From positions 275,427-339,426 of the forward strand of contig NIVC01000048.1 in assembly GCA_002269645.1 (NCBI GenBank): a DNA stretch of 64,000 nt. Direction: 5' to 3'. Of the stretch, positions 14,888 to 64,000 are shown piece by piece (positions within the stretch are counted from its first letter, which is position 1; every line of letters starts with the position of its first letter). The stretch is from Macrostomum lignano (Eukaryota). The translations under genes were made by a program, and so were the position numbers. A model generated the notes under the pieces. The model was given only the letters and a program-made list of their open reading frames with translations, was not told the origin of the DNA and did not search any database.

Positions 14888-17425
14888 TGTAGAAAAAATA
14901 CTAAACTAAAGACTAGAGAGTTACTTGGAGTTAAATTGAATCTAAGATAAGCCAGTAAGTGGGCGCAGGGCCCAAACAAGTATATTTATACCAGACATTA
15001 ACTTAGGGGGTTTGAATTGCAGATAATAAAGAGAGGGGTGGAGTGCGCGACTAAAAAGAGAGGCGAGAATGGAGAACCAATCAGAACGCAGCAAGGGAGA
15101 GAGAGATAAGAATAACAAGATTGAGCTAGACAGAGAGAGAGAAAACGGAGTAAACAGAGACAAGTGAAGGTGAACTAAGAAATGACTAGGAAAGTCGCGA
15201 CACTCCCCCCAAAAAATGGAACATTTTTTGAATTTTCGAGTACCAATAGAATTATGAATTAGAGTTCAAGAAACAACTTTAAAGCAAATTTAACAATGGT
15301 GTACGAGCTACAAATACGACTAAGAATTTCAATACAAAAAACTGTAGAGACTAGAGTGAATGCAAAATTGACCAAGAAATTTCACGTGTGCGATTTTAAT
15401 GAATAAATTGTTACAACCAAATGAAAACTGACTACATTTACCCTCCCCCCTAAAAAATTAATTTAATTTTTTACATTGTGACTACATGGTGAAAGAAAAA
15501 ATTGAACGACGAATTAACGAGGCGATCTGGCAGGCGATGAGCGAAGAGACGATCCGGCAGGCGATGAGCGAAGAGACGATCCGGCAGGCGAGCCCCGAGG
15601 CGCCCCGGCCGAGAATTTGAAACCGAGAGAGACCGAGGACACCGCAGGACGCACCCCTGGCAGACGATGAGCGAAGAGAGTCGAGACGATCCGGCAGGCG
15701 AGCCCAGAGGCGCCCCGGCCGAGAATTTGAAACCGAGAGAGACCGAGGACACCGCAGGACGCACCCCCGGCAGACGATGAGTGAAGAGAGTCGAGACGAT
15801 CCGGCAGGCGAGCCCAGAGGCGCCCCGGCCGAGAATTTGAAACCGAGAGAGACCGAGGACACCGCAGGACGCACCCCCGGCAGACGATGAGTGAAGAGAG
15901 TCGAGACGATCCGGCAGGCGAGCCCAGAGGCGCCCCGGCCGAGAATTTGAACCGAGAGAGACCGAGGACACCGCAGGACGCACCCCCGGCAGACGATGAG
16001 CGACGACTACATGTAGATGAAGGAGCACCGGCAGACAGTCGAGACGAGATGAGATGGGATGAGACTGCTCCGGCCGACAGTTGACGAGATGGGAGTGCGC
16101 AGTCGACGAACGATGAGACGAGGAGACTGGTGGAGGGCTACGAAGATGGCATGGCCTTTGCCAGCCTAACTGAATTGACCTATATTGACTAAATTATTTT
16201 ACATTGGGCGCCATGTAGAAAAATAGACTAAATAACTAGAAGTTGAACTGGATGTTGAATACTGTTGAAAATTGAATACTAAGATAAGCATTTCGTATTC
16301 ATTTCGTAGTCGCAGTAAATTGCTTTGTTTAATTTACTTAAAAATAGTATTTGAACTATAATTCATAATTTCTGTTGGTACTCGAATCGAAAGTTCAAAA
16401 AATGTTTCATTTCGCGACTTTCCTCGGGGCTCGCCTGCCGGATCGTCTCTTCGCTCATCGCCTGCCGGGGGTGCGTCCTGCGGTGTCCTCGGTCTCTCTC
16501 GGTTTCAAATTCTCGGCCGGGGCGCCTCTGGGCTCGCCTGCCGGATCGTCTCGACTCTCTTCACTCATCGTCTGCCGGGGGTGCGTCCTGCGGTGTCCTC
16601 GGTCTCTCTCGGTTTCAAATTCTCGGCCGGGGCGCCTCTGGGCTCGCCTGCCGGATCGTCTCGACTCTCTTCACTCATCGTCTGCCGGGGGTGCGTCCTG
16701 CGGTGTCCTCGGTCTCTCTCGGTTCAAATTCTCGGCCGGGGCGCCTCGGGGCTCGCCTGCCGGTTCGTCTCTTCGCTCATCGCCTGCCAGATCGCCTCGT
16801 TAATTCGTCGTTCATTTTTTTCTTTCACCATGTAGTCACAATGTAAAAAATTAAATTAATTTTTTAGGGGGGAGGGTAGATGTAGTCAGTTTTCATTTGG
16901 TTGTAACAATTTATTCATTAAAATCGCACACGTGAAATTTCTTGGTCAAATTTGCATTCACTCTAGTCTCTACAGTTTTTTGTATTGAAATTCTTAGTCG
17001 TATTTGTGCACCATTGTTAAATTTGCTTTTAAAGTTGTTTCTTGAACTCTAATTCATAATTCTATTGGTACTCGAAAATTCAAAAAATGTTCCATTTTTT
17101 GGGGGGAGTGTCGCGACTTTCCTAGTCATTTCTTAGTTCACCTTCACTTGTCTCTGTTTACTCTGTTTTCTCTCTCTCTCTCTCTGTCTAGCTCAATCTT
17201 GTTATTCTTATCTCTCTCCCCCTTGTTGCGTTCTGATTGGCTCTCCGTTCTCTCCTCTTTCCTCAGTCGCGCACTCCACCCCCTCTCTTTATTATTCTGG
17301 GCTCAACCCCCCAAAGTTAAATTTTCTATAAATATATCGGTTTGGGCCCTGCGCCCACTTACTGCTCATTCTGCTCCTTCAATTTAACTCCAATTAAATA
17401 GTCTGTAGTTTTCTCTTAGTGTCTC
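14888..17425. mobile_element. Foldback (long inverted-repeat) insertion with internal ~120-bp tandem units, flanked by 80-bp direct repeats
   Basis: About 14925-16005 is the reverse complement of about 16420-17395. 14808-14887 is identical to 17426-17505. Confidence 0.75.
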
Positions 17426-19054: not shown

Positions 19055-19807
19055 TCAGTCAAACGGAGACACGCATTCGCACAGCACTCGATCCGTGGCA
19101 TACGTTTCAAAAAGGTCTGAGAGTCCATTCGCATAGCTATACCTTGCGATAACGTTCTCATTACCGATTAGGTCTGGCTGTCCAGTGGCCCAGAAGTTTC
19201 CAACGCTGATATTGCAGCCGACCCAGTACCAGCCGCCCAGAGGCTCCGCAATGCCTGCTGGCTGGAGGCCTCCGAGCCAGATCGATTGTCCAGAGCTGTA
19301 GGTTGAGTAGATCGAGTCCACGTGCCTTATCTCCTCAGCGCTGGTCACGTCGGCCATGATGACCAGACCGCTCTCCGACTCGCACTTCTGCCTGCTCGGC
19401 CACCACGTCCCGATGCCAGAGTACAGCCTGTACTTCACTCCGCACAGGTCCATGCCGTAGCCAGACGGACACAGCGCGCCCGCCTCGAGTCCCGGCCGCT
19501 GCTTGACGAACACCCGGCCTCTCCTGGAGCAGCCGCAGCTCCTCACCGACTTGCTGCACTTGTCGAACACGAACAGCTGGCACGGACCGTCAGCCAGGCT
19601 GAACGCCTGACAGCGCAGCTTCCGGGAGCACAGAGCGGCGCAGGCCAGCTTTCTGACCACGGCTGGGTGGGACTCGACGAACTCGGCATTGATGCAGAGG
19701 CTGCCGTCAATGAGGCTGTACTGCTGCTCGTTGGCATTGGTGAGTTCGAGTTCGTGACTCATCACAACCATGAGAACGATAGTGAAGACAATTTTCAGCT
19801 GGCTCAT
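19055..19807 (-). CDS. Secreted PAN/apple-like + C-type lectin protein, copy 2 (QPD motif), intronless, 250 aa
   Basis: Signal peptide MSQLKIVFTIVLMVVMS. Same architecture as copy 1, with WATGQPDL and VLCEC. Confidence 0.85.
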   Translation of the reverse strand: MSQLKIVFTIVLMVVMSHELELTNANEQQYSLIDGSLCINAEFVESHPAVVRKLACAALCSRKLRCQAFSLADGPCQLFVFDKCSKSVRSCGCSRRGRVFVKQRPGLEAGALCPSGYGMDLCGVKYRLYSGIGTWWPSRQKCESESGLVIMADVTSAEEIRHVDSIYSTYSSGQSIWLGGLQPAGIAEPLGGWYWVGCNISVGNFWATGQPDLIGNENVIARYSYANGLSDLFETYATDRVLCECVSPFD

Positions 19808-26959: not shown

Positions 26960-27462
26960 TCACACGGCCATCTGCATAGCAATTTTACCGTGAGGCTCGT
27001 AGCCAACCAGCTTGAAATGCTCGGTCTTGAAATCCTCCAATCTGGTGGGCCCATCGGCAATCTCCAGTTTAGGAAACGGGCGCGGCTGCCGGCTGAGCTG
27101 CTCGCGCAGCGCGGCATCGTGGTTGGTGTACACGTGAGCATCGCCAAGGGTGTGCACAAACTCCCAAGCAGTCAGGCCTGTCACCTTAGCAATCATATGG
27201 GTGAGCAGAGCGTAGCTGGCGATATTAAAGGGCACACCCAGACCCATGTCGGCAGAGCGCTGGTACAGCTGGCATGACAGCCTGCCATCTGCTGTGCAGT
27301 ACAGCTGGAACAGGCAGTGACAGGGCGGCAGGGCCATCTGGTGCAGCTGGGCGGGGTTCCATGCTGAGATCACTATGCGACGATCGCTAGGATTTGTGCG
27401 CAGAGTTTCCACAGCTTTGGCCAATTGGTCAACGCCCTGGCCGGTGTAATCTGCGTGCATGT
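26960..27462 (-). CDS. TYMS: Thymidylate synthase, exon 2
   Basis: Acceptor ctccgcag| at 27464-27463. Contains [17 protein letters not shown] (catalytic Cys), [29 protein letters not shown] and C-terminal MQMAV. Confidence 0.97.
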
Positions 27463-27509
27463 CTGCGGAGTGGGGGCGGGGGGGGCTCAGGCAGTTGTTG
27501 GATTGGGAA

Positions 27510-29327
27510 CATACATGCGCAACAGCCAACCGATCCGGCCGACCGATTTGGCGGCCAACCAAGTAAGTTGCAAAATTGATTAACCGCCAACCAAGTAAGT
27601 CGCAAAATTGATTAACCGCCAACCAAGTAAGTCGCAAAATTGATTAACCGCCAACCAAGTAAGTCGCAAAATTGATTAACCGCCAACCAAGTAAGTCGCA
27701 AAATTGATTAACCGCCAACCAAGTAAGTCGCAAAATTGATTAACCGCCAACCAAGTAAGTCGCAAAATTGATTAACCGCCAACCAAGTAAGTCGCAAAAT
27801 TGATTAACCGCCAACCAAGTAAGTCGCAAAATTGATTAACCGCCAACCAAGTAAGTCGCAAAATTGATTAACCGCCAACCAAGTAAGTCGCAAAATTGAT
27901 TAACCGCCAACCAAGTAAGTCGCAAAATTGATTAACCGCCAACCAAGTAAGTCGCAAAATTGATTAACCGCCAAAAAAACGAAAAAACAAAAGACGAAAA
28001 AGGGGAAAGGAAAAGGAAAAAACGAGAAAAAGGGAGCAAAGAGAAAGAGAAAAACACAAAAAGAGTTGTAAGTGCTGTAAGTTGCAGCACTGAAGACAAG
28101 GTAAGTCGCACCGAGGGAGAGCTAAGTCGCAGCAGGACTGAGTTAAGTCGCAGAGCATCTTTAGGATTATTAGGAAAGGATTAGTTTAGGATGAATTTAA
28201 TGTATCACTTACTAGGGTGTAGGCTACGTGTGCATTAACGCATCAATTTGAAAAAATTAAGAATTACGAAGGCAGAAATGGCTAAGGAATAGAAATAGGG
28301 ATAGAATAACTTATAAGAAGTAATTTTTCAGTCCTATTACAATTGCAAATCATACTTTTAATAATATTTAATTAGCAAATTAAAACTGCAAGATTCTAAC
28401 GGTCTTATATATGAACTTAGAAGAACTGTAGTCTTAATGATTACACATGTACCATTGTAGTAATTGATTAAAATTGTAGCAGATTAAAACTGATAAAAAA
28501 AACTTTCAAAATAGTCCACTTAGCAAATCAGAATTTCATCAGCGGAGGCCCATTTATTCGAAACCGTAGTAGATGCTCCAATGTTTTTGGTGCCAAGCGT
28601 GTTCTCCTGTCATAGGCACTGTGCTTATAGATAGAAAACCCTCTTTCAGCCTCAGCTGATGACATTGGCAAAGTTAACACAACCATAATTAGATTCTTTA
28701 TTCTGGGCAGCCATTCAACAGTTCTTGTCTTTAGAAAGTGACTCCAAAATTTCACCGGACCTTTGCCTTTGTAGGCACAGAAGTCAACACTATGCGAAGT
28801 GATCAAACTTTTAGGAGTAGACCGAACTGACCAGAGATTGTCCTTTCTGTAGCGCGTTCTGAAGCATCTGCATCTCTAGAGTCTGAATCAGAAAGAGGGT
28901 CCTCTGTTTCAGAGGCAGAGCTGTCATCTTCCATTCCAAACCGTCTAGCAAGAGGTATGATTCTCGAACTGTATGTAAAGATAGTATGTAATGTTTCAGC
29001 ATTAGGCAATAACACTGGGTTGAGCACATTCATACATACGCAACAGTCGGCCGAGTCGGCCAATCTGGCCGACTGATTTGGTGGCCAACCAAGGAAATCG
29101 CGAAAATGCCCACCCAAAAAAATACCCAAGTAGTAGTACTAAGTAGCTGACGAGGCATTTTGCCTTAATAGGACAGTCATAGTTACTCCTGCCGTTTACC
29201 CAAAGTTGCGTTAATTTTGCTCTAGGGTTTTTTACATGTAAGTCGCATTTTTGGCCAAAAACTACGTCGCATTTTTGTTAAAACTAAGTCGCACGGCCGA
29301 CCGAATTTTGGAGGTTGCGCATGTATG
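27510..29327 (-). mobile_element. Internally deleted hAT transposon in the TYMS intron
   Basis: 14-bp TIR catacatgcgcaac / gttgcgcatgtatg. Perfect 8-bp TSD attgggaa (27502-27509, 29328-29335). hAT dimerisation-domain remnant LTLPMSSAEAERGFS at 28528-28806. Confidence 0.92.
27556..27972. repeat. 32-bp minisatellite (aaccaagtaagtcgcaaaattgattaaccgcc), ~13 units, in the hAT subterminal region
   Basis: Direct reading. Confidence 0.95.
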
Positions 29328-29339
29328 ATTGGGAATAGG

Positions 29340-30194
<855 letters not shown>

Positions 30195-48478: not shown

Positions 48479-48601
48479 CAATAATCACAGACAGTAAAAG
48501 TTGATTAAAGAAGTAGAGTGATAAAAAAACTACAAATCGTTCGTGACAAGCAATTAAGAATATTCTTTCTAGATCAAACAATCTCTGCTGAACCAAGGAA
48601 A

Positions 48602-51600
48602 ATGCAGGTTGATCACGAGATCAGTGCTGATGAGGCTGCCAGCACAGGAAATATCCAAGCACTCAGACATCATCTCGACCGTCAGATAGGAGAAAAGAAC
48701 ACATATTTTTTTTGCAAAAGGTATTTACCTGATGCTGCATCCCATGGTCACTTAGAACTGGTCAAGTTTCTCGTGCCGACAGTCGCTGACCAAAAACAAA
48801 GAGATTATTGCTGCATCAAAGCTGCCGAATCTGCTGCAGTGAAGGGCCACATTGAAATCGTCAAGTTTCTCGTGCCGACAGTCGCTGACCAAACAAAAAG
48901 AGATGATTGCTGCATCAAAGCTGCCGAATATGCTGCAGTGAAGGGCCACATTGAAATCGTCAAGTTTCTCGTGCCGACAGTCGCTGCGCAAACAATAAGA
49001 GATGATTGCTGCATCAAAGCTGCCGGATCTGCTGGCAGATATGGCCACATTGAAATCGTCAAGTTTCTCGTGCCGACAGTCGCTGACCAAACAAAAAGAG
49101 ATGATTGCTGCATCAAAGCTGCCGGATCTGCTGGCAGATATGGCCACATTGAAATCGTCAAGTTTCTCGTGCCGACAGTCGCTGACCAAACAAAAAGAGA
49201 TGATTGCTGCATCAAAGCTGCCGAATATGCTGCAGTGAAGGGCCACATTGAAATCGTCAAGTTTCTCGTGCCGACAGTCGCTGACCAAACAATAAGAGAT
49301 GATTGCTGCATCAAAGCTGCCGGATCTGCTGGCAGATATGGCCACATTGAAATCGTCAAGTTTCTCGTGCCGACAGTCGCTGACCAAACAAAAAGAGATG
49401 ATTGCTGCATCAAAGCTGCCGAATATGCTGCAATCAAGGGCCACATTGAAATCGTCAAGTTTCTCGTGCCGACAGTCGCTGACCAAACAAAAAGAGATGA
49501 TTGCTGCATCAAAGCTGCCGGATCTGCTGGCAGATATGGCCACATTGAAATCGTCAAGTTTCTCGTGCCGACAGTCGCTGACCAAACAAAAAGAGATGAT
49601 TGCTGCATCAAAGCTGCCGAATCTGCTGGCAGAGATGGCCACATTGAAATCGTCAAGTTTCTCTTGCCGACAGTCGCTGACCAAACAATAAGAGATGATT
49701 GCTGCATCAAAGCTGCCGGATCTGCTGGCAGATATGGCCACATTGAAATCGTCAAGTTTCTCGTGCCGACAGTCGCTGACCAAACAAAAAGAGATGATTG
49801 CTGCATCAAAGCTGCCGGATCTGCTGGCAGATATGGCCACATTGAAATCGTCAAGTTTCTCGTGCCGACAGTCGCTGACCAAACAAAAAGAGATGATTGC
49901 TGCATCAAAGCTGCCGAATCTGCTGGCAGAGATGGCCACATTGAAATCGTCAAGTTTCTCGTGCCGACAGTCGCTGACCAAACAAAAAGAGATGATTGCT
50001 GCATCAAAGCTGCCGAATCTGCTGGCAGAAATGGCCACATTGAAATCGTCAAGTTTCTCGTGCCGACAGTCGCTGACCAAACAAAAAGAGATGATTGCTG
50101 CATCAAAGCTGCCAAATCTGCTGCAGACGAGGGCCACATTGAAATCGTCAAGTTTCTCGTGCCGACAGTCGCGGACCAAACAAAAAGAGATGATTGCTGC
50201 ATCAAAGCTGCCAAATCTGCTGCAGACGAGGGCCACATTGAAATCGTCAAGTTTCTCGTGCCGACAGTCGCGGACCAAACAAAAAGAGATGATTGCTGCA
50301 TCAAAGCTGCCAAATCTGCTGCAGACGAGGGCCACATTGAAATCGTCAAGTTTCTCGTGCCGACAGTCGCTGACCAAACAAAAAGAGATGATTGCCGCAT
50401 CAAAGCTGCCGAATATGCTGCAGTGAAGGGCCACATTGAAATCGTCAAGTTTCTCGTGCCGACAGTCGCTGACCAAACAAAAAGAGATGATTGCTGCATC
50501 AAAGCTGCCGCATCTGCTGCATTCAATGGCCACATTGAAATCGTCAAGTTTCTCGTGCCGACAGTCGCGGACCAAACAAAAAGAGATGATTGCCGCATCA
50601 AAGCTGCCGAATCTGCTGGCAGAAATGGTCACTTTGAAATCGTCAAGTTTCTCGTGCCGACAGTCGCTGACCAAACAAAAAGAGATGATTGCTGCATCAA
50701 AGCTGCCAAATCTGCTGCAGACGAGGGCCACATTGAAATCGTCAAGTTTCTCGTGCCGACAGTCGCGGACCAAACAAAAAGAGATGATTGCCGCATCAAA
50801 GCTGCCGAATCTGCTGGCAGAAATGGTCACTTTGAAATCGTCAAGTTTCTCGTGCTGACAGTCGCGGACCAAACAAAAAGAGATGATTGCTGCATCAAAG
50901 CTGCCGCATCTGCTGCATTCAATGGCCACATTGAAATCGTCAAGTTTCTCGTGCCGACAGTCGCTGACCAAACAAAAAGAGATGATTGCTGCATCAAAGC
51001 TGCCGAATATGCTGCAGTGAAGGGCCACATGGAAATCGTCAAGTTTCTCGTGCCGACAGTCGCGGACCAAACAAAAAGAGATGATTGCTGCATCAAAGCT
51101 GCCAAATCTGCTGCAGACGAGGGCCACATTGAAATCGTCAAGTTTCTCGTGCCGACAGTCGCTGACCAAACAAAAAGAGATGATTGCTGCATCAAAGCTG
51201 CCGAATATGCTGCAATCAAGGGCCACATTGAAATCGTCAAGTTTCTCGTGCCGACAGTCGCTGACCAAACAAAAAGAGATGATTGCTGCATCAAAGCTGC
51301 CGAATCTGCTGCAGTGAAGGGCCACATTGAAATCGTCAAGTTTCTCGTGCCGACAGTCGCTGACCAAACAAAAAGAGATGATTGCTGCATCAAAGCTGCC
51401 GAATATGCTGCAGTGAAGGGCCACATTGAAATCGTCAAGTTTCTCGTGCCGACAGTCGCTGACCAAACAATAAGAGATGATTGCTGCATCAAAGCTGCCG
51501 GATCTGCTGGCAGATATGGCCACATTGAAATCGTCAAGTTTCTCGTGCCGACAGTCGCTGACCAAACAAAAAGAGATGATTGCTGCATCAAAGCTGCCAA

Positions 51601-54045
51601 ATCTGCTGCAGACGAGGGCCACATTGAAATCGTCAAGTTTCTCGTGCCGACAGTCGCGGACCAAACAAAAAGAGATGATTGCTGCATCAAAGCTGCCAAA
51701 TCTGCTGCAGACGAGGGCCACATTGAAATCGTCAAGTTTCTCGTGCCGACAGTCGCTGACCAAACAAAAAGAGATGATTGCCGCATCAAAGCTGCCGAAT
51801 ATGCTGCAGTGAAGGGCCACATTGAAATCGTCAAGTTTCTCGTGCCGACAGTCGCTGACCAAACAAAAAGAGATGATTGCTGCATCAAAGCTGCCGCATC
51901 TGCTGCATTCAATGGCCACATTGAAATCGTCAAGTTTCTCGTGCCGACAGTCGCGGACCAAACAAAAAGAGATGATTGCCGCATCAAAGCTGCCGAATCT
52001 GCTGGCAGAAATGGTCACTTTGAAATCGTCAAGTTTCTCGTGCCGACAGTCGCTGACCAAACAAAAAGAGATGATTGCTGCATCAAAGCTGCCAAATCTG
52101 CTGCAGACGAGGGCCACATTGAAATCGTCAAGTTTCTCGTGCCGACAGTCGCGGACCAAACAAAAAGAGATGATTGCCGCATCAAAGCTGCCGAATCTGC
52201 TGGCAGAAATGGTCACTTTGAAATCGTCAAGTTTCTCGTGCTGACAGTCGCGGACCAAACAAAAAGAGATGATTGCTGCATCAAAGCTGCCGCATCTGCT
52301 GCATTCAATGGCCACATTGAAATCGTCAAGTTTCTCGTGCCGACAGTCGCTGACCAAACAAAAAGAGATGATTGCTGCATCAAAGCTGCCGAATATGCTG
52401 CAGTGAAGGGCCACATGGAAATCGTCAAGTTTCTCGTGCCGACAGTCGCGGACCAAACAAAAAGAGATGATTGCTGCATCAAAGCTGCCAAATCTGCTGC
52501 AGACGAGGGCCACATTGAAATCGTCAAGTTTCTCGTGCCGACAGTCGCTGACCAAACAAAAAGAGATGATTGCCGCATCAAAGCTGCCGAATATGCTGGC
52601 AGATATGGCCACATTGAAATCGTCAAGTTTCTCGTGCCGACAGTCGCTGACCAAACAAAAAGAGATGATTGCTGCATCAAAGCTGCCGCATCTGCTGCAT
52701 TCAATGGCCACATTGAAATCGTCAAGTTTCTCGTGCCGACAGTCGCGGACCAAACAAAAAGAGATGATTGCCGCATCAAAGCTGCCGAATCTGCTGGCAG
52801 AAATGGTCACTTTGAAATCGTCAAGTTTCTCGTGCCGACAGTCGCTGACCAAACAAAAAGAGATGATTGCTGCATCAAAGCTGCCGGATCTGCTGGCAGA
52901 TATGGCCACATTGAAATCGTCAAGTTTCTCGTGCCGACAGTCGCGGACCAAACAAAAAGAGATGATTGCCGCATCAAAGCTGCCGAATCTGCTGGCAGAA
53001 ATGGTCACTTTGAAATCGTCAAGTTTCTCGTGCTGACAGTCGCGGACCAAACAAAAAGAGATGATTGCTGCATCAAAGCTGCCGAATCTGCTTACAGTAA
53101 TGGTCACTTTGAAATCGTCAAGTTTCTCGTGCCGACAGTCGCTGACCAAACAAAAAGAGATGATTGCTGCATCAAAGCTGCCGAATATGCTGCAGTGAAG
53201 GGCCACATGGAAATCGTCAAGTTTCTCGTGCCGACAGTCGCGGACCAAACAAAAAGAGATGATTGCTGCATCAAAGCTGCCGCATCTGCTGGCAGATATG
53301 GCCACATGGAAATCGTCAAGTTTCTTGTGCCGACAGTCGCCGACCAAACAAAAAGAGATGATTGGTGCATCAAAGCTGCCGAATCTGCTGCAAGCAATGG
53401 TCTGCAGGATGTCGTCGAGTTTCTTATCTCGTTTCTCTCAAGTCCCGATCAGAGAGCGAATCTCCGTTTCCAATGCGCAGTCGCGACTTGCTCTCGTCTT
53501 CACGAAGATGTCGCTGCCTTCCTTGGCCTAGAGCCCGACTGGCTCTTCCAATCCAGCACCATCCTCAGCTTCACTGCAGCAATGGCCATCGAAGGCAGGA
53601 ACTCTGTTCTCACCGACACCCTATCTCGAATGCAGCCACCTCACATCACACAGCTGCTCCGTCTCTCCATCTCTCAAAGACACGTCGCTCTTGCTGTCAC
53701 AATTGCTGTCACACTGATCAATGATGAGCGAGTCAGCACACAGCATGTCGATCTCCCAGAAGACAGCACTGGAGCCACTGCTCTCATGCTGGCAGCTGAT
53801 GCAGGTCATCATGAGCTCATTGAGAAACTCATCGATCTCGGTGCGTCAGTGCGTGCTGAAGACAGTCAGGGTCGGACTGCTCTGTCACGAGCGTGCGAAG
53901 CCGGTCATGTGCGAGCAGCCAAGGCTCTGATGGACAGAGGAGCGGATGCGAGTCATCGAGACGGTCGGGGTCAGACGTGTGCGCAGGTGGCACAGCGATT
54001 TGAGCAGCAGCAGGTGCTGCGGCTGCTTCATCCCAGTGAAGCGGG
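48602..54045 (+). CDS. ANK-cGLR gene exon 1: 47-unit atypical ankyrin array plus 2-3 canonical ankyrin repeats
   Basis: Uninterrupted ORF. 33-aa units xxAxxxGHIEIVKFLVPTVADQTKRDDCCIKAA at exact 99-bp spacing (48827 to 53381). Canonical GATALMLAADAGH and GRTALSRACEAGH follow. Donor GG|GTGAGT at 54046. Confidence 0.9.
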
Positions 54046-54465
54046 GTGAGTGAGGCAATGTTATTGCTTGTAAAAATTCTTGCAATAGAAAATGCAATTG
54101 GCAGAAGTAGAAAACAAAGGGAACAAGAAAAGAGGTGAGCCAGAAAAATGGGAGAAAAAGAGAAAACAGAAAAAAGACGCAACAAGAACGCCCCCATCCG
54201 CTTTTTGAATTTTTTCTACTTCGAGAGAAACTTCTGGTGCATGACAATCTCCGACTCAACTGCTGTGAGAAGTGAGAACCCTTACTTTCCTTCCTGCATT
54301 GCAGTAGCCCAGAGGCCCGGCAGGCAGCCGCTCACCGCTTGGAGTCGGGCCGCCATCGGTGAGTCTGACCGGTTCGGCTTTCACTGCCTCATTGCACCTT
54401 CCAACAGGCTGGCAGCTTGGGGCAGAAATTGCAGCGAAACTCGGCAGGGATGAGATTGGGTTGGA

Positions 54466-54905
54466 CTGAGTGCTGCAGCAGCTGCACTCTCAGCTCTCCT
54501 GCTTGAGATGCCAGTCTGAGTGCTGCAGCAGCTGCACTCTCAGCTCTCCTGCTTGAGATGCCAGTCTGAGTGCTGCAGCAGCTGCACTCTCAGCTCTCCT
54601 GCTTGAGATGCCAGTCTGAGTGCTGCAGCAGCTGCACTCTCAGCTCTCCTGCTTGAGATGCCAGTCTGAGTGCTGCAGCAGCTGCACTCTCAGCTCTCCT
54701 GCTTGAGATGCCAGTCTGAGTGCTGCAGCAGCTGCACTCTCAGCTCTCCTGCTTGAGATGCCAGTCTGAGTGCTGCAGCAGCTGCACTCTCAGCTCTCCT
54801 GCTTGAGATGCCAGTCTGAGTGCTGCAGCAGCTGCACTCTCAGCTCTCCTGCTTGAGATGCCAGTCTGAGTGCTGCAGCAGCTGCACTCTCAGCTCTCCT
54901 GCTTG
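54466..54905. repeat. 50-bp minisatellite (~9 units) in intron 1 of the ANK-cGLR gene
   Basis: gctgcactct recurs at 54481, 54531 and onward. Confidence 0.96.
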
Positions 54906-54959
54906 TTCCGTCCATCCAACTCTGAGCAAATCTCTCACACGCATCTCGAATCGTTCCAG

Positions 54960-55327
54960 GCTCTCAGATGACTCTCAGCAAGACAGGCGTCTGAGTGAGG
55001 AGCTGCATCGACTGCTCAGCGAGGCGGGATTCACCGAGGAGAGAGCAAAGTGTCAGCAGAGACTGGCTGACTGGCTGGAAGAAGTCGCTCAAGTCCTCAC
55101 ACAGGATGACAGGCAGATGACGGGCAGCTACGCAGAGGGCTGGGCCAACAGTCTGGTGCAAGTGAACGGCAGGACAGCTGCAGACTCGGACATTGACTGG
55201 ACTGTGCTGGTTGCTGGGCAAGAGTTCCATCTGGAAGGTGGCTGCGACAGAGAGGGATATCGTTCCTGCCGAGACGCCACTCGGCTGCAGGTCATGGAGG
55301 GCCACGCACAGGTGGCAGTGGGAGCAG
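54960..55327 (+). CDS. ANK-cGLR gene exon 2: nucleotidyltransferase catalytic core
   Basis: Acceptor cgttccag| in phase 2, matching the exon 1 donor. MTGSYAEGW...ADSDIDWTVL is the hGS...DxD motif of Mab-21/cGAS-type NTases. Donor G|GTGAGT at 55328. Confidence 0.82.
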
Positions 55328-56167
55328 GTGAGTGAGGCTGGGTTCATCATCAGAATGCTGAGATCCGCATGCAACTGGAGGCCCATTAACTTTGCTCAAC
55401 TTTAAATTTTGCAACCGAGTGGCGCATAGTCTCCAGCAGTTTCTGTGACTGCGAATGTCGGCTTGGGTGCTGAAATAAGCGGCAGGCGAAATTGAAAAGA
55501 AAACTTTGATGCCAACTGGCTGAGCCGGGCCATTGGGTTTTGAATTCACAGGCTCCGATTGCAGCAGAGTGGATGCAGCGGTGCTTGGGTGACCCACGGT
55601 AGGCGGCATGGCTCTGCTGAGGTGCTGCTGCTCTCACTTGGGAAATTTCAAACAAAATAAACCGAAGCCGCCCTGACTGCCTGATTGGTGCCTTGCTGCG
55701 GGGCACTGAGTTCTGATGATGCTTGAGCAGCTGTGCTGAGCTGCAACCTGATGAAGCCAGAGCACCTGAAGCTGAAGCTGGGTGAACTCAGTGGGTGCAG
55801 AGGCTCATGCCTCACAGGTGCACTTATTTGGCTCTTCAAGAAGCGTCGAAATTCTGTGACGTCTCACCGAGCAGCTTGTGCTGTACACTGGGCCAGACGG
55901 AGAGCATTGCAACCCTCGCCACACAGCGAGAGGCGCCCCCCACTCTCACTGGAGTCTCTAACGCCTTTGCAGGCTAGGCAACGCCGCCCACAATGTACAC
56001 ATTTTTTATTGATATTAAATAAAAATAGCTCGTGTGTATTGATTAGTAAATGAAAATGGAGTTGCAAAAGCAAAATTCCCAACCGGCCAGGAGCAAATCT
56101 GCAGTTTCAAACCAACCCATTTTTTTCACTCGCCACAAAGCCACTCTCCGCTCACTGCGCTTTGCAG

Positions 56168-57741
56168 GCAGCCAACCTGCAGTGACAGCCACGGCGTGCG
56201 GTGTGCGGCCTGCACAGGACACGTGCCATGCAATCGAGTGCTGCAGCAGTTTCTGTGAGGACAGAAGTAGAAAACCGGTTCTATTCAATAACAGAGTTCA
56301 CCTCGTGCGGGCGACCAGACCGAGCTCGACCAACGAGCTCAGAGTGAGCTTCAGCTTCCAAGAGAAATACATCATGGGACGGCTGAGCACAGTCCAGGGC
56401 CAGCTGTTCACACTCATCAAGTTCATCTTCAAGAGACACTTGCCGCTCACTCTGGACACACCTGGACTCAAGACCTACCATGCAAAGACACTGCTCTTTA
56501 CAATGCTGGAGAAGCATGGCACAGATACCGAAACTGACGCTTGGAAGCTCCACAATCTGATCGCTCTGCTCAAGGAGTCTCTCGACTTGATGCTGAGCTT
56601 CATCGACTCGAGCAGCTCGCCCGATGAGTGCATGCCGCACTTCTTCATGCCCGACGCTCCGCTCTACTTCAAGAACGCTGGAATCGGCGGCGACTTCGAC
56701 AATACGAAGGCGAGGGTTCGAGACGGACTTTTTGAGCTGAGAAGCGACATCGGTGGAGTGGTCGAGCAGCTGAGGAGACTCGTGAGACCTCTGCAGTCAG
56801 AGAAGTTCTACTTTCACCCGTTCACTCTGCTGCCTCTGACAGCGCCGCCTGCTGTCACTGAGATCAGGGAAGGAAGTGGCTACACAGAAATGTACTACAA
56901 TTTCGCAGACGTGTACAGTATGGTGCACCAGTGTGTGAGCGAGCTGCAGTCGGAATCAAGCAAAAGATACACCCTGATGAGGCAGCTCAGTCTCCTGCAT
57001 GAGCTGCAGTGGTGCAAGTGCGCCGCCCTGTGCATGACCGCAATGGCGCATTTGAAGTTCAGAGAATCTGAGGAGGCTGAGAGACTCGCGATGGAGCTGC
57101 AGAGACATCAGGTTCAGTCAGGGTTAAAGCCACAGGGTATTCGAATTTATGAATTGCCAGCAGACTCAGACTGGGCGTGGAGGTTCTGCCTCCCCTGCGA
57201 CTCTCCGCCTCGCTTCCCATTCCTTCCCGAGTTCACGCAGACTCTGTTCACAGCCAGACTGTCGCAGCCTCTCTCCTCCCACCTGTACGTGAACTTTCGC
57301 TGCCTGAGCTGGAGTCTCCAAGCTGAGCTGCTCTGCAATCGCGCACCTGCAATTAAACTGGACGATTGGAAGCGAGAGCTGGAAGAAGACCCGGACTTGG
57401 AGGAGCTGCTCACTCTGGCTCACTACAGCGACTGCCGCGAGCACGTGGAGCTCAGCTTGCAGCAGATGGAGATGATCGAGAAAGAGAGACGCGTCGTCAT
57501 GGAGACGCAGGACGAGGAGAAGATCGGCTGGGTCAGGCAGAAGCGGTGGCGAGTTTCGAACCGCAGCGGCAGCGACAGCGGCGCTCACCGCAGCAGGGAA
57601 GATGAGGAGCGGAGGCTGTGGGCGAGGGCGAGGCTGCGGCGAGACGGGGTCGACTTGGGTCGCTTCGTTGCCATGGAAACAGCAGCGGAGCAGAGAGACA
57701 GCTGGACTCACGTCAAGCTTATTCGAATGAGACTGCAGTGA
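56168..57741 (+). CDS. ANK-cGLR gene exon 3: Mab-21 C-terminal domain plus helical extension
   Basis: Acceptor ctttgcag| in phase 1, matching exon 2. QDTCHAIEC (candidate third acidic residue). RVSFSFQEKYIM...LIKFIFK...LKTYHAKTLLF and CMPHFFMP are Mab-21 hallmarks. Confidence 0.85.
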
Positions 57742-57939
57742 CCTGAGGACTTCGTTACTCAGATTTTTTAATTTTTCTGGACTCGAATTTCAGAACCCAT
57801 AATAATGTACTTTTACCGTTTGGCTTCCTTGACTTTCTTCTGTTAAATTCAGTTGAGTCCGTAAGTTTTAGAATTTGTATTTCAACTATTTTTGCTAATT
57901 TTCTGTGAATTATCTTTAATATCATAATATGCAATGGTT

Positions 57940-58250
57940 ATGAATATTGTCTGCACATGCTGTTGGATTGTCTGCACATGCTGTTGGATTGTCTGCACAT
58001 GCTGTTGGATTGACCGCACATGCTGTTGGCTTGTCTGCACATGCTGTTGGATTGACTGCACATGCTGTTGGATTGACCGCACATGCTGTTGGCTTGTCTG
58101 CACATGCTGTTGGATTGTCTGCACATGCTGTTGGCTTGTCTGCACATGCTGTTGGATTGGCTGCACATGCTGTTGGATTGTCTGCACATGCTGTTGGATT
58201 GTCTGCACATGCTGTTGGATTTTCTGCACAAGTTGTTGGATTGTCTGCAC
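57940..58250. repeat. 21-bp minisatellite (ctgcacatgctgttggattgt)
   Basis: Direct reading. Confidence 0.95.
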
Positions 58251-59119
58251 ATCCTCTTACATTATCTTTACATCCTGTTACATTGTACATCACGTCACAT
58301 TATCTATACATATACTGTTGAATTTTCTGTACACGCTTTTTTAATGTATGAAAATGCTGTTGAATTATCTCTGCATTCTCTTGGATTATCTATGCAGGCT
58401 TTTGTACATGCTGTTAGATATATGTACATCCTGTTACATTATATGTACATGCTGTTGGATTAACTGTACATGATGTAGGTATGTTGTCCGAAGCATGTAC
58501 TTGTAACTGTACCGCTCATAGACTTTTGGATCAAGTTATGCCGAAGATTTTTCCTGTAGCTGACTTTGCTACTTTTTTAGGAAATGAGCACATCGAGAGC
58601 CATCGAGTGCGAGTAGCCCTCCTGCTATGAACTGCAGTTTTGTACATTCGTGCTGCAATTCAATTCAGCCTGCATTATAAATTATGAATTTCTTTATCCG
58701 TTCAAACTGCGTGTCTGCTTTGATGCGGGCTTTTTTCTGCGATTTTGTTCTGCGGACTTCAATACACAATTGCCAATGCTTTTAATGAAATATATAAGCC
58801 AAATATACAGGTGACAGTAATCTGCATGGAAACCTGGTAATCTGGAAAATCCTAAGGTCGGTTGGGTCAGGGAGAAGCTGGACAGACTTGATGCAGCAGC
58901 TTGAGCTGAACTCAGAAACTGTAAGCCTCTGGCTTTGCCCGTGCAGTTTGAGAAATTTTACTGCACATGTTTCTGATATTTAAAATGTACTTTAATGGCT
59001 TAAAATATTGTGTGTACATGCTCCTGGATTCTTTAAGCAGCTGCTCTCAGAATCACCTCAATCAGTCTGCAAATTGATTTCATCATGTACTTTCATCATG
59101 TACTCATGTACCCTGCAGA

Positions 59120-59790
59120 GACTGGCAGCCTGACAGCTCCCTAATGAACATTCAGTGACTGACAGCCTGACAGCTCCCTCATGAACATTCAGTGACTGAC
59201 AGCCTGACAGCTCCCTCATGAACATTCAGGGACTGACAGCCTGACAGCTCCCTAATGAACATTCAGTGACTGACAGCCTGACAGCTCCCTCATGAACATT
59301 CAGTGACTGACAGCCTGACAGCTCCCTCATGAACATTCACTGACTGACAGCCTGACAGCTCCCTCATGAACATTCAGTGACTGACAGCCTGACAGCTCCC
59401 TCATGAACATTCACTGACTGACAGCCTGACAGCTCCCTCATGAACATTCACTGACTGACAGCCTGACAGCTCCCTCATGAACATTCAGTGACTGACAGCC
59501 TGACAGCTCCCTCATGAACATTCAGTGACTGACAGCCTGACAGCTCTCTCATGAACATTCAGTGACTGACAGCCTGACAGCTCCCTCATGAACATTCAGT
59601 GACTGACAGCCTGACAGCTCCCTCATGAACATTCAGTGACTGACAGCCTGACAGCTCCCTCATGAACATTCAGTGACTGACAGCCTGACAGCTCCCTCAT
59701 GAACATTCAGTGACTGACAGCCTGACAACTCCCTTATGAACTTTCAGTGACTTACAGCCTGACAGCTCTCTCATGAACATTCACTGACGG
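59120..59790. repeat. 37-bp minisatellite (gactgacagcctgacagctccctcatgaacattcagt)
   Basis: About 18 units. Confidence 0.96.
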
Positions 59791-60169
59791 GACTGACCGG
59801 ACAGGCAGGTCGCGGCCCCAGTCGCCATTCATTTTTCTGTCCGATCCAAGAGCTCCGCACGCTGCTGATGAACTCAAAACTGCGGCCATTTCTATATTGC
59901 CGTCCATATTTGATGCCTGCTCTGTGCCATAAACCAAATGCACTGCTTCGGTTTCTAAATATAGAATGATGCGACCTGCCACTCGCTCTCAGTGCCAGCT
60001 CTGAGGCTCTGCAAGGGTGGCTTGAATGTCATTGAAATGTCAACCAGTGCTTTGCAGATTTGCCTCATAAAATTCACTTGATGGAGATGTGCGTGCGTTC
60101 CAGCAGCCAGGTAGCTTAAATTAAGAAAAATTTGAAATCTAAAACAAATTACAGAAATAAAATAAGTTA

Positions 60170-60330
60170 AGGGCTCGAGTCCGGGACCGAGCAGTGGGGA
60201 TGCAGTGAGCATCTGAAGTGGGCTCGAGTCCGGGACCGAGCAGTGGGGATGCAGTGAGCATCTGAAGTGGGCTCGAGTCCGGGACCGAGCAGTGGGGATG
60301 CAGTGAGCATCTGAAGTGGGCTCGAGTCCC
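60170..60330. repeat. 49-bp tandem repeat, 3 copies
   Basis: gggctcgagtccgggaccgagcagtggggatgcagtgagcatctgaagt. Confidence 0.93.
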
Positions 60331-60487
60331 TGAATGATTAGCGGGGATGCAGTGTGCTTGACCCGCAGGTTCAGTTAATCCCTCAGGAGCTGCACTGGCT
60401 GCTCCCACAGCAACATGCAGACAGGGGGATGCAGAGGAATCTGCGATTGGCCTCCGAGCCCGCAGTGGCAGCGAACGCTTCCCTGCG

Positions 60488-60992
60488 CTGTCTCGCCCTC
60501 CCTCTTTCTCGCCCTCACTCTGTCTCGCCCTCACTCTGTCTCGCCCTCACTCTGTCTCGCCCTCACTCTGTCTCGCCCTCACTCTGTCTCGCCCTCACTC
60601 TGTCTCGCCCTCACTCTGTCTCGCCCTCACTCTGTCTCGCCCTCACTCTGTCTCGCCCTCGCTCTGTATCGCCCTCCCCTGTCTCGCCCTCGCTCTGTCT
60701 CGCCCTCACTCTGTCTCGCCCTCACTCTGTCTCGCCCTCACTCTGTCTCGCCCTCACTCTGTCTCGCCCTCACTCTGTCTCGCCCTCACTCTGTCTCGCC
60801 CTCACTCTGTCTCGCCCTCACTCTGTCTCGCCCTCACTCTGTCTCGCCCTCACTCTGTCTCGCCCTCACTCTGTCTCGCCCTCACTCTGTCTCGCCCTCA
60901 CTCTGTCTCGCCCTCACTCTGTCTCGCCCTCGCTCTGTATCGCCCTCCCCCTGTCTCGCCCTCACTCTGTCTCGCCCTCACTCTGTATCGCC
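60488..60992. repeat. 16-bp minisatellite (ctgtctcgccctcact)
   Basis: Direct reading. Confidence 0.96.
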
Positions 60993-62894
60993 ATCATTCC
61001 GTACTCCTGTCGCGTTTGCAGTCGATGGACTGCGGGACTGGCGTCATCGCCCAGTGAAAATGAGCCTGCACCTACACACAGTCAAACTCCTAAACCAGAT
61101 TCTCAATCCGCAATGGCATTATGGGAAACCACTCAGTTCTGGCAAATCCAGTCCCTACTCAGACAATTCATAAGTATTGATTGCAAAAGAAACACGCCGT
61201 ACTTATCGGCATGCTGGCCGGTGCCGGAATGTCGCGCAGGTGAAGCCAAGATAATCCAGAGAGACTTTGTGGCCTACTTGATGACGAAGGAGTGATGACT
61301 GAAGTCTCGAGGCTTTCCAGCTGCCTGTTTGTTATATCAAGCGTTGGGTTTTCTGATTGGACGAGTCCGGGATGACTAGCTCGATTCTGATTGGATGAGC
61401 TCAAAACCCCACAATGCTCTCTATCGAGAGGCCTCTCAGACTCCGTGGGACTTGACAGGTGCGGTCATAAATCATAAAAATGGGGGAAAAGCCAGTCAAA
61501 ATCCTTGACTTGTCGGAGCCAAAGAATGACAGCTAGACGATCGCCAATCACAAAAACTGACGAAAACGATGACTAAAAATCACCTTGTTAGAGTGACAGG
61601 TAGGTGATCATAAATCAAAATCAGTCCAGACCGGCTGAGCTCTGGACAGGTAAACCATTCAACAAAGCAGAAACCACAAAAATTCAGTAAGACCTAGAAA
61701 ATTCCAAGAACAAATAGTAGATAAAAATCCTTACCCAGCCTACTTACAGTAACAGAGATGGGAACCAGGCGCGATTCTAAGATTGGAAAAAGTGCGACCT
61801 CATCAATATTGGTGGCAGATCTGATGCTGAGAAGGACATTGAATGGAATATTGTGTGCCATTCTGGGTGTGCAGCAGCGATGGAGATGGACACATTTCAC
61901 CATGCGGAAGTGCTACGGCAATCCGCCAGCCGTTGCACCAAGTCGCCACTGTCGGCATCTCCGCCTCCATCAGCTCAATTGACCCCAGCTTGAGCACACC
62001 TGACCCGTCTGTAGTCACCTGCCACTTCTCAGAGTGCTCAATTTCAGCTACAGGTGCCAGAAGCTTTGAAAGTTCTAATAGGAATTCTCCAGCAAGGTGT
62101 CAATGGCAGGGCCTTGGCAACTAAAGACACGGAAGACTGCAGTTTCCATCTGTGACCGTCACAGCTGCTTGAACGGAAACCGCAGACTTGTAATCACTCC
62201 AGGTACACGCTGATGCTTATTCCTCTGCGATGCCTTCTGCACACACCTGTTCTTGAACCCGTGAGACGCACACGCACCGGATATCTAAATTCATTCCAGA
62301 GGATTTTCCAAGACTTCTGCGTTACCGCAGGGTTCCGCCTGTTGTGGCTGAGGTGTCGAACTCCAGAGTAACATTAAGTATAGTTTAGTGTAACACCGAA
62401 GAATTCAATATAATTTCAGTATGAAACGCATTATGAAGTGGGCAGTCGGTGGCTGAATAAAGTAGTACAGTCGCATTTTACGCTACTTATTTGAGGAAAA
62501 GCTTGATAAATAAATTTACTTTAATAGCGTAAATATTAAGCATGCTGGAGACAGCACACCGATGCAGACAGTAAAAGTACAAACAGATCAAGGTAGAAGT
62601 GCATCAAAGTGCACTCAGTGCTGTATGGTTACAGTGAGATGTACGATAGAACAGTCAGTACAGTTGGGGTCTGCGAGTGCCTGTCAGTGTGGCTCTATGC
62701 AGCCTTAGTATGTTGAATAACTGCACACGGCATCGTGTACACACAGATAGCAGACACACACTGACAGGCCGAGAAGACACACACACAGACAGCAGACACA
62801 CAGAGTTGTTGGAGAAAACACACACACACACACAGAGCAGACACATGGACAGACACAAAGGACCACAAAAAATCGATTGCAGTTGATCTGGAAG

Positions 62895-62992
62895 GCGGAT
62901 GTCAGGGTGTCAGGCGGACGTCAGGGTCTCAGGCGGATGCCAGGGTGTCAGGCGGATGTCAGGGTGTCAGGCGGATGTCAGGGTGTCAGGCT
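62895..62992. repeat. 19-bp minisatellite (ggcggatgtcagggtgtca)
   Basis: About 5 units. Confidence 0.9.
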
Positions 62993-63324
62993 CCGATTTG
63001 AGCCCATAGCAACCGCTCTGCTCACATGAGCAGCCCAACCCACATAAACTTGTGCACAGGTCACCAAGACACGCTGAATTTACAAAACAGACTTGATAAG
63101 AATGATTGCGCATAGCATGCAGCTTCTGATTGGATGAATCTGGCAATGCATTCTGCAGCACAATGCGGCACTCAATGTAAACCAATATGAACAAAATCAG
63201 TCAGAGTTGCGCACGAGTTGCCTGTGAGTTCATCTGCACTGATGGCCGAATTGTGGCACCTGAAATTGAAGGTGTGCAGTGGGGGTCTTTGAATTGACTT
63301 TGGTGGGCGATTTTAATGGCATTG

Positions 63325-63640
63325 GGGCGATTCCCAGTGAGATTGGAGGCGAGTCCCAGTGAGATTGGAGGCGATTCCCAGTGAGATTGGAGGCGATTTC
63401 CAGTGAGATTCCCAGTGAGATTGGAGACGATTTCCAGTGCGATTCCCAGTGAGATTGGAGACGATTCCCAGTGAGATTGGAGGCGATTCCCAGTGAGATG
63501 GGAGGCTATTTCCAGTGAGATTGGAGGCGAGTCGCAGTAAGATTGGAGGCGAGTCGCAGTTAGATTGGAGGCGAGTCGCTGTGAGATTGGAGGCTATTCC
63601 CAGTGAGATTGGAGGCGATTCCCAGTGAGACGGGAGACTA
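63325..63640. repeat. ~21-bp minisatellite (cccagtgagattggaggcgatt)
   Basis: Direct reading. Confidence 0.92.
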
Positions 63641-64000
63641 GCAGCTCAAGTATATGGCGGGACAAACAGACAAGATAGAACTGGGCGCTTATGGCCTCGT
63701 ATTCACAAGCAAATACACTAATTAACAAACATTTAAAGAATGACGCGATCAAACAAAAATATTGAGCATCAAAAACTGATCATCCCCACGCCTTGCCGGT
63801 TTTTAGTTGCCAACGCTGAGCTTTACAAGGATTGACCAAAGCTGGAACGCTACAAAAATACGCAGTATTTGAGTGAGCTCAAGACAACAGAAATGTAGCG
63901 AGCACCGCAGTTATGACACGAAAGTCCACAATCGTAGGCAATTTTTAGCAAAGAATTTTATTAGAAACGGCAAGATGATGCTGTGCAGCAAAGATTCTGC

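Follow-up and report, generated by a model that had tools for sequence, protein, structure and literature searches.

The subject of this report is a gene in a 64,000-nucleotide stretch of the Macrostomum lignano genome (contig NIVC01000048.1, positions 275,427 to 339,426 of the forward strand), which is referred to throughout as the window and in whose own numbering all coordinates below are given. A gene model of four exons with canonical AG/GT sites, matching phases and junction peptides that are conserved in annotated paralogs yields a protein of 2479 aa. Most of exon 1 is taken up by a tandem array of 47 ankyrin-type repeats whose variation is concentrated in a cassette of six codons per repeat, and the C-terminal half of the protein corresponds to a predicted Mab-21/cGAS-like nucleotidyltransferase. 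An earlier note on this DNA had described the array and had missed this context, namely that the array forms the N-terminal part of a Mab-21/cGAS-like protein. The elements of the gene are as follows.

48602..54045, plus strand: exon 1, from the start codon (MQVDHEISADEAA...) to the donor GG/GTGAGT (the slash marks the exon end)
48761..53413, plus strand: tandem array of 47 units, 99 bp (33 aa) per unit, each unit reading VKFLVPTVADQTKRDDCCIKAA-xxAxxx-GHIEI
48827..53398, plus strand: span of the 47 cassettes, each occupying columns 67-84 of its unit; in the ankyrin consensus these are positions 9-14, the C-terminal end of the inner helix
54305..54358, plus strand: exon 2, a mini-exon of 54 nt (SPEARQAAAHRLESGRHR) with AG acceptor and GT donor, in phase
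54960..55327, plus strand: exon 3, predicted N-lobe of the Mab-21/cGAS-like nucleotidyltransferase (MTGS...DIDW), 100% identical to the annotated protein P0012
56168..57741, plus strand: exon 4, predicted remainder of the nucleotidyltransferase, Mab-21 C-terminal helical domain and family-specific tail to the stop codon

The N-terminal part of the protein, encoded by exon 1, opens with a capping repeat, continues with the 47-unit array and then a degenerate linker, and closes with two to three canonical ankyrin repeats; the start codon at 48602 agrees with the annotated N-termini of the paralogs P0018, P0027 and P0146. The peptide encoded by exon 2 is conserved in the paralogs P0002, P0018 and P0146, and no signal peptide was seen by eye in the product. 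A polypyrimidine-AG sequence (ttctttctag, window 48571-48601) lies 30 bp upstream of the start codon and may be an acceptor for the spliced leader known from M. lignano. The intron between exons 2 and 3 carries a perfect 50-bp tandem repeat (54466-54905; 8.8 copies, 100% matches).

Tandem Repeats Finder places the array at 48761-53392, with a period of 99 bp, 46.8 copies, 93% matches and a score of 7705. When cut every 99 bp from 48761, the array falls into 47 units with no indels, all in the frame of the open reading frame (ORF) 48518-54049, and these represent 21 distinct DNA haplotypes, the first and last units being the most diverged. The cassette comprises the six codons that precede the Gly-His (GH) dipeptide, unit residues 23-28, the first cassette starting at 48827 and the last ending at 53398. 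Twelve cassette types are present: KSAADE (nine units), GSAGRY and EYAAVK (eight each), ESAGRN (seven) and ASAAFN (five), followed by the minor types ESAAVK, EYAAIK and ESAGRD (two each) and EYAGRY, ESAYSN, ASAGRY and ESAASN (one each); both these counts and the exact 99-bp spacing of the 47 cassettes reproduce those of the earlier note. Over the 1551 residues of the array, mean pairwise amino-acid identity among units is 86.4%, with 94.8% for the scaffold and 48.5% for the cassette, and the array as a whole is neutral, with a net charge of +3 over the 1551 residues and an isoelectric point (pI) of 7.6. Several other frames and the reverse strand are also open across the array because the 99-bp unit lacks stop codons; these frames, among them an ORF of 1531 aa on the reverse strand, were therefore rejected as by-products of a stop-free unit.

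The difference between scaffold and cassette is equally marked in the DNA. Nucleotide diversity is 0.295 in the 18-bp cassette vs 0.024 in the scaffold, and 10 of the 17 non-singleton polymorphic columns of the unit lie within the 18 cassette columns (hypergeometric P = 3e-5). The ratio of nonsynonymous to synonymous differences per site (pN/pS, Nei-Gojobori) is 1.7-1.8 for the cassette and 0.44-0.60 for the scaffold. The positions that vary are ankyrin consensus positions 9, 10, 13 and 14, to which the window array adds position 12. The part of the unit outside the cassette had been described as almost invariant even at synonymous sites, which overstates its uniformity: synonymous variants occur at column 27 (GCT/GCG, 16 units) and column 87 (GGC/GGT, 8 units), and amino-acid variants at Ile31 (to Phe, Met or Gln, 12 units), Cys18 (to Arg, 9 units), Lys13 (to Ile, 4 units) and Pro6 (to Leu, 3 units). 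A diversity-generating retroelement was considered as a source of the cassette variation and rejected, the cassette codons showing on inspection neither adenine-specific substitutions nor a template copy.

On the evidence of sequence and structural modelling, the repeats are ankyrin repeats of a divergent subtype. Pfam assigns Ank_2 with an E value of 4e-232 (752 bits vs a cut-off of 27.3), and Ank_4, Ank and Ank_3 likewise score above their cut-offs. Five concatenated units align without gaps to chains of designed ankyrin repeat proteins (DARPins) and of ankyrin-1, and in DARPin numbering unit residue D15 becomes position 1 and the cassette becomes positions 9-14. The TPLH motif is absent, its place being taken by K-A-A-x, in which x is the first cassette position. 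The gap-free alignment confirms what had been stated from the letters, that the last two cassette residues, just ahead of GH, occupy DARPin positions 13 and 14; the description of the array as DARPin-like that accompanied this statement applies in part. Positions 13 and 14 do vary, but at the other positions randomised in DARPin libraries (2, 3, 5 and 33) 46-47 of the 47 units have D, C, I and R, and the further variation falls at framework positions 9, 10 and 12.

A single-sequence AlphaFold model of the cap and 11 repeats (48602-49849) reached a predicted local distance difference test score (pLDDT) of 90.9, with three of the five models of low confidence. Each modelled repeat has one helix of 18 residues (unit positions 11-28) and one of 10 residues, with a loop of only 3 residues, and the cassette therefore makes up the final turn and a half of the longer helix; the earlier note had proposed mapping the variable sites on a model, and in this one they map to the C-terminal end of that helix. 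The model lacks the beta-hairpin finger loop, the hairpin region being helical, an assignment that is model-based and provisional. Foldseek searches with the array model returned ankyrin proteins as all top matches, with template modelling (TM) scores of up to 0.57-0.59, the best being ankyrin-1/B and DARPin fusions. Since positions 9 and 13, and likewise 10 and 14, are one helical turn apart, they would line up as a single stripe along the inner helix. The binding groove of ankyrin solenoids with solved structures is made up of inner helices and finger loops (PMC4358367), and from the alignment and the model we infer that the variable residues face the ligand-binding groove. The repeats also carry a Cys-Cys pair in each repeat (DDCC, unit residues 17-18, ankyrin positions 3-4), which amounts to 84 cysteines in the window array and is kept in every paralog scaffold, including the arrays of the loci L002, L003, L004 and L007; this Cys-Cys stripe could be involved in metal binding or acylation.

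For the C-terminal half of the protein, sequence profiles and modelling agree in predicting a Mab-21/cGAS-like nucleotidyltransferase. The Pfam family Mab-21_C was matched by 12 of 12 aligned family members (best 8e-7). When a profile of the Mab-21 part, made from the family alignment trimmed of its ankyrin parts, was run against 177,635 PDB sequences, it matched only Sp-cGLR1 (8gjy, E = 4e-4) and cGAS chains. An AlphaFold model of the enzyme part was obtained with a pLDDT of 71.5 and a predicted TM score (pTM) of 0.75, and the best 50 Foldseek matches to it were all cGAS, MAB21L1, MB21D2 or Sp-cGLR1, over 360-390 aligned columns. The active site of cGAS-like receptors (cGLRs) follows the pattern h[QT]GS, X8-20, [DE]h[DE]h and then h[DE]h 50-90 residues on, where h is a hydrophobic residue (Li et al. 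2023, PMC9980059). The window protein has MTGS followed after 20 residues by DIDW, corresponding to the h[QT]GS and [DE]h[DE]h elements, and in the family alignment G55, S56 and S76 are invariant and D75, D77 and D79 nearly so.

A search with the ORF downstream of the array retrieved 25 homologs, of which 24 are from M. lignano and the remaining one is a metagenome protein (P0016); P0012, an annotated fragment, is 100% identical to the part of the query that it covers. An exhaustive profile search gave 89 clusters at E <= 1e-30, and the high-scoring representatives that were looked up all come from M. lignano except P0016, with one weaker match from sequencing-run assemblies. The M. lignano family proteins combine ANK with Mab-21_C, most of them with long ankyrin N-termini. 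By these sequence comparisons, the array gene belongs to a large M. lignano-specific family, among whose members the following repeat numbers were counted.

L007: 27 units
L003 and L004: about 28-30 units each
P0026: 8 units
P0146: 9 units
P0018: 8 diverged units
P0007: about 3 units
P0005: no repeats

Family copies occur in tandem clusters. A 37-bp minisatellite that lies downstream of the gene (59116-59788) recurs beside paralogs, at 3657-4066 of L002 and 81-1169 of L008, and this recurrence, along with extra Mab-21 copies in L002 and L006, places the family in tandem gene clusters. The protein P0152 (BOX15_Mlig026614g1) has the order diverged repeats, ankyrin, Mab-21-like, ankyrin and caspase (Peptidase_C14, 2.8e-27); if its gene model is right, the caspase would tie the family to cell-death signalling. 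The P0146 locus (L008) was considered as a possible homeolog and rejected, since its array is only 78-80% identical and thus that of a diverged paralog. In L007, two 98-bp units (8152-8249 and 8745-8842), six units apart, share an identical one-base deletion, which may reflect either a frameshift spread by block duplication, as in a pseudogene, or a systematic homopolymer error of the older assembly. The literature yielded nothing specific on this Macrostomum family or on animal cases of the repeat pattern.

The paralog arrays provide independent replicates of the contrast between scaffold and cassette. The scaffold of L007, L003 and L004 reads VKFLVPQINDQSNRDTCCIKAA......GHFEI, is near-uniform within each array and departs from the window scaffold at 20% of consensus bases (19.8% for L007). 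The window and L007 arrays are separated by 14 fixed nucleotide differences, every one of them outside the cassette, and polymorphism affects 14 of the 18 cassette columns vs 14 of the 81 columns of the scaffold (Fisher P = 0.0012). In the arrays of the window, L007, P0026, P0146 and P0018, per-position entropy is highest at unit positions 23, 24, 27 and 28, and the noisier arrays of L003 and L004 vary at the same cassette positions. Since scaffolds are homogenised within arrays and differ between independent paralogs, their concerted evolution through unequal crossing-over and gene conversion, with cassette diversity either retained or selected, is well supported at the sequence level. Homogenisation of the scaffold combined with hypervariability of the cassette had already been proposed in the earlier note; the proposal is upheld by this comparison of paralogs, in which the arrays are not invariant and the same cassette positions vary, as well as by the pN/pS values given above.

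Written as haplotype letters, the window array reads ABCDBEFDGHDGIJKKLMNJNOPKFQBEJKLMNJNOPKRMNDNSPTU. Its longest exact internal duplicate measures 1014 bp at an offset of 14 units, and the 8-unit block LMNJNOPK has three occurrences.

50345..51136, plus strand: higher-order repeat copy 1, units 17-24, 792 bp identical to units 31-38
51731..52522, plus strand: higher-order repeat copy 2, units 31-38
52523..53314, plus strand: higher-order repeat copy 3, units 39-46, adjoining copy 2

The cassettes of copy 1 run EYAAVK, ASAAFN, ESAGRN, KSAADE, ESAGRN, ASAAFN, EYAAVK, KSAADE. Copy 3 differs from copy 2 at 35 bases, 32 of which fall in the cassette columns of four units, the remaining four units being identical. 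The array has grown by 8- and 14-unit duplications and has changed by conversion of units or of sub-unit tracts and cassettes, so the shuffling suggested earlier is borne out by the higher-order repeat analysis. The related suggestion that rare cassette types are chimeras and imply crossovers inside the cassette holds in a narrower form. The EYAGRY and ASAGRY units are indeed mosaics once flanking scaffold markers are counted, and four-gamete violations were found for scaffold markers vs the cassette, but ESAAVK differs from EYAAVK by a single base, and the four-gamete test of one cassette half vs the other gave no violation; a crossover strictly within the cassette is plausible.

Two comparisons that might have informed on unit order were rejected. 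Positions 51359-64000 of the window match contig L001 (assembly GCA_002269645.1) at 99.07% identity, and within the array this contig differs only at variable columns and has many single-base indels; it is a mixed consensus and therefore confirms nothing on unit order. The near-identical loci L003 and L004 are too error-ridden for calls of cassette order. Among 5.8 billion sequences in a protein collection, none reproduces the array, the matches being paralogs only, at no more than 63% identity.

The pattern of hypervariable positions in homogenised repeats is already known from the NOD-like receptors (NLRs) of fungi and is so far unreported for this animal gene family. In the ANK, TPR and WD repeats of fungal NLRs, which are STAND proteins, internal identity exceeds 85%, repeat number varies and positive selection acts on the concave face (Dyrka et al. 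2014, PMC4986451). The criterion applied to such repeats is a minimum of 85% identity among the units across 100 or more residues (PMC4986451), and the window array, at 86.4%, exceeds it, as do those of HET-E/D/R and the NWD genes of Podospora. Common to both are tandem 33-aa ankyrin repeats, concerted evolution by reshuffling, a variable repeat number, a few hypervariable inner-helix positions on the concave face (placed there in our case by the DARPin alignment and the model) and large lineage-specific families with diverse domain partners. The two differ in that the partner in Macrostomum is a C-terminal predicted Mab-21/cGAS-like nucleotidyltransferase, whereas the NACHT/NB-ARC domain of the fungal proteins is N-terminal to the repeats. 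A Pfam scan of the 2479-aa product and its paralogs detected no NACHT/NB-ARC (nucleotide-binding oligomerization, NOD) domain, so the array gene is not a member of the fungal NLR family. Additionally, the host here is an animal, the beta-hairpin positions are constant, and the array has 47 units, whereas fungal ANK loci have 7 to >16, the largest example having 21.

Other known systems share some of these features. cGLRs fused to ANK or TPR repeats exist in other animals, for example Stylophora pistillata, and their repeats have been proposed to serve in ligand or protein interaction (PMC9980059). The Macrostomum protein resembles them in joining a predicted nucleotidyltransferase of cGAS/Mab-21 fold to ankyrin repeats; near-identical hypervariable arrays are not described in that work. 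With DARPins the array shares a consensus-like, near-identical scaffold, gap-free alignment and variation at positions 13 and 14; it differs in varying the framework positions 9, 10 and 12 where the library also randomises 2, 3, 5 and 33, in having 47 units rather than 2-3 internal repeats, in its KAAx in place of TPLH, and in the hairpin region, which is helical in the Macrostomum model. In animals, the zinc-finger array of PRDM9 is a coding minisatellite that combines concerted evolution of the scaffold with variation at ligand-contact residues and rapid turnover by unequal exchange, although its units are 84-bp zinc fingers, number about 8-20 and bind DNA, so that fold and function are different. 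Transcription activator-like (TAL) effectors are likewise built of near-identical tandem repeats that recombine with one another and have their hypervariable residues at a fixed site, but they adopt another fold and bind DNA by a code of one repeat per base, whereas the Macrostomum array is charge-neutral. Finally, the long solenoids of ankyrin-R/B/G (24 repeats) and NOMPC (29 repeats) form a superhelix with a groove that is lined by inner helices and binds extended peptides; their repeats are mutually diverged and their groove residues extremely conserved between species, whereas in Macrostomum the repeats are near-identical and the groove-side residues vary. Extended peptides bound by known long ankyrin solenoids occupy three to five repeats at each site (PMC4358367).

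Considered as a whole, these findings are probably best explained by a germline-evolving ankyrin recognition module carried on a cGAS/Mab-21-like protein. The gene would encode a cytosolic protein of 2479 aa that begins with a long alpha-solenoid of some 49 ankyrin-type repeats; a few ordinary ankyrin repeats come next, and then the nucleotidyltransferase. Unequal crossing-over and gene conversion keep the 99-bp units near-identical, the array expands and shrinks through multi-unit duplications, and whole units or cassettes are swapped among positions. Despite this homogenisation, positions 9, 10, 13 and 14, on one face of the inner helix, stay diverse, with position 12 also varying in the window. 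Selection would hold these groove-lining residues diverse, and the reshuffling of a small set of cassettes could generate new binding surfaces over evolutionary time in the germline. More tentatively, the array might serve a cGAS-like signalling enzyme as its sensor or regulatory part, the family might be a lineage-specific expansion that functions in innate immunity or cell-death signalling, and the ligand might be a protein or peptide that is read by several adjacent repeats rather than by one residue or base per repeat. A further step would be to see in this gene a new kind of sensor, in which a reshuffled DARPin-like solenoid, and not nucleic acid bound to the enzyme, controls a cGAS-like nucleotidyltransferase and recognises pathogen or other non-self proteins. 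The family would then be a functional animal counterpart of the fungal NLR repeat receptors, in which germline repeat shuffling gives rise to receptor diversity; we regard this stronger version as doubtful. Somatic rearrangement of the array, or a code of one repeat per unit, finds no support.

Several observations weigh against the proposal of a germline-evolving recognition module on a cGAS/Mab-21-like protein. On the side of the enzyme, Pfam detects only the Mab-21 C-terminal domain, and in the window protein itself this reaches 22.8-23 bits vs a cut-off of 24.1; the N-lobe was modelled with low confidence, and the Foldseek scores are weak (E about 5e-4, TM about 0.45). The third acidic residue of the active site is ambiguous, as the D of A-Q-D-T at +58 is near-invariant and lacks hydrophobic flanks, while I-E-C at +64 fits h[DE]h and is not conserved in the family. 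The A-Q-D-T residue shares its spacing from a PAVT motif with D319 of human cGAS, in a region where the model is of low confidence. The caspase fusion of P0152, which would connect the family to cell death, could be an artefact of the gene model. On the side of the array, the cassette pN/pS exceeds 1 only moderately, and the units on which it was calculated recombine and are not independent of one another; nor can the 47 cassettes be counted as so many separate draws, because there are 21 haplotypes and an exact 1014-bp duplicate at the 14-unit offset. Synonymous diversity is also higher in the cassette (0.19 vs 0.04 in the scaffold), and old retained variants or imported tracts could therefore contribute to the pattern without positive selection. 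The number and order of units rest on a single assembly, contig L001 of the older assembly breaks inside the array and has a garbled consensus there, and the comparison arrays come from this error-prone older assembly and contain frameshifts.

The main rival explanation, which we consider unlikely, is that the array is a neutral coding minisatellite, produced by recent slippage or unequal-crossing-over amplification of founder units that already differed, in which case the cassettes would be meaningless and the gene might be decaying. The setting is congenial to such an origin, since the window holds more than 40 tandem-repeat arrays, the exact internal duplications of 792-1014 bp indicate very recent amplification, the array comprises just 12 cassette types and 21 haplotypes, its stop-free unit leaves multiple frames open, including on the reverse strand, and the paralog arrays of the older assembly have frameshifts. 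Neutral amplification accounts for the block duplications; it does not account for the sparing of the same codons in independent arrays. Founders that differ by about 30% in the cassette and about 2% elsewhere would need an explanation of their own, identical positions are hypervariable in arrays with different scaffolds, and the fixed differences between arrays all lie outside the cassette. A scaffold pN/pS below 1 moreover signals purifying selection, and the 2479-aa frame is intact over four exons with conserved splice junctions. It is similarly improbable that the array is real while its unit count and order are in part an assembly artefact, owing to expansion, collapse or mis-joining. The locus in GCA_002269645.1 starts inside the array, differs at variable columns and has many single-base indels, which together with the exactness of the 1014-bp duplicate and the lack of any protein reproducing the array in the 5.8-billion-sequence collection would be in keeping with such an error. 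All 47 of the units are nevertheless exactly 99 bp long and in frame with no garbled columns, the unit haplotypes are discrete and recurrent, and paralogs independently show arrays of about 27-30 units, so that an artefact of this kind would touch the number 47 and not the pattern.

Two functional alternatives have much less to recommend them. The earlier note had envisaged a readout like that of TAL effectors, in which each repeat recognises one unit of a polymer (a nucleic acid, a glycan or a repeat protein) and the string of cassettes spells the target. The formal likeness is real, comprising near-identical repeats, a fixed hypervariable site, five dominant cassette types and a long solenoid, and the family of the fused domain includes known sensors of double-stranded DNA and RNA. 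We nonetheless consider such a code very improbable: with a net charge of +3 over 1551 residues the array is neutral, the order of its cassettes is accounted for by 8- and 14-unit duplications, repeat number among paralogs is anywhere from 0 to 47, and the long ankyrin solenoids whose structures are solved engage extended peptides over several repeats at each site. To our knowledge, one-to-one readout has not been described for any ankyrin protein, which also counts against such a code. Equally little credence is due to a structural or mechanical role as a spring, spacer or scaffold, comparable to those of 29-repeat NOMPC and the 24-repeat ankyrins, with variation in the exposed cassette simply tolerated. 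Although the solenoid is long, regular and confidently modelled, and although its best structural matches are ankyrin-1/B and DARPin fusions, relaxed constraint alone predicts a pN/pS of about 1 and a diversity no higher than that at synonymous scaffold sites, whereas cassette diversity is 12 times that of the scaffold and there are 0 fixed cassette differences between arrays. Homogenisation should, furthermore, remove neutral variants from the cassette as it does 10 bp away.

If the array is indeed a recognition module on a cGAS/Mab-21-like protein, the combination of a homogenised scaffold with hypervariable contact residues, which is documented mainly in fungal NLRs, would also exist in an animal, on a cGAS/Mab-21-like rather than a NOD chassis. 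The gene family would also constitute a large, expanded family of candidate cGLRs in a phylum that has been reported to have largely lost cGLRs. The features that set the case apart are the animal host, the cGAS-like partner domain, the expansion of the family and the extreme repeat number. For repeat-protein engineering, the arrays would offer natural, evolution-tested variants of an ankyrin binding surface on a scaffold that is stable through 47 repeats. Since M. lignano is amenable to RNA interference and transgenesis, the idea is directly testable.

The window as a whole holds more than 40 tandem-repeat arrays, dozens of them minisatellites; away from the array gene it also contains exons of thymidylate synthase, one exon of an ADP-dependent glucokinase and two Ty3/gypsy-like elements. 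The thymidylate synthase exons were recognised by eye at 26960-27637 and 29532-30164, both on the minus strand, where tandem repeats with 32-bp units (27554-27974) and 45/91-bp units (29345-29559) run into the ends of the corresponding ORFs. The ORFs of the Ty3/gypsy-like retroelements lie at about 30.6-33.5 kb and at 39.5-44.3 kb. A 110-bp tandem repeat forms two inverted arrays at 15573-16003 and 16446-16771, about 440 bp apart, whose consensus units are reverse-complementary and which constitute a large palindrome. Two paralogous single-exon ORFs of about 250 aa are found on the minus strand at 8149-8892 and 19055-19807; by eye they resemble PAN/apple and C-type-lectin-like domains with an EPN motif, and Pfam returns weak PAN hits only. 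The two ORFs share a long identical central stretch, which, on their sequences, suggests recent gene conversion.

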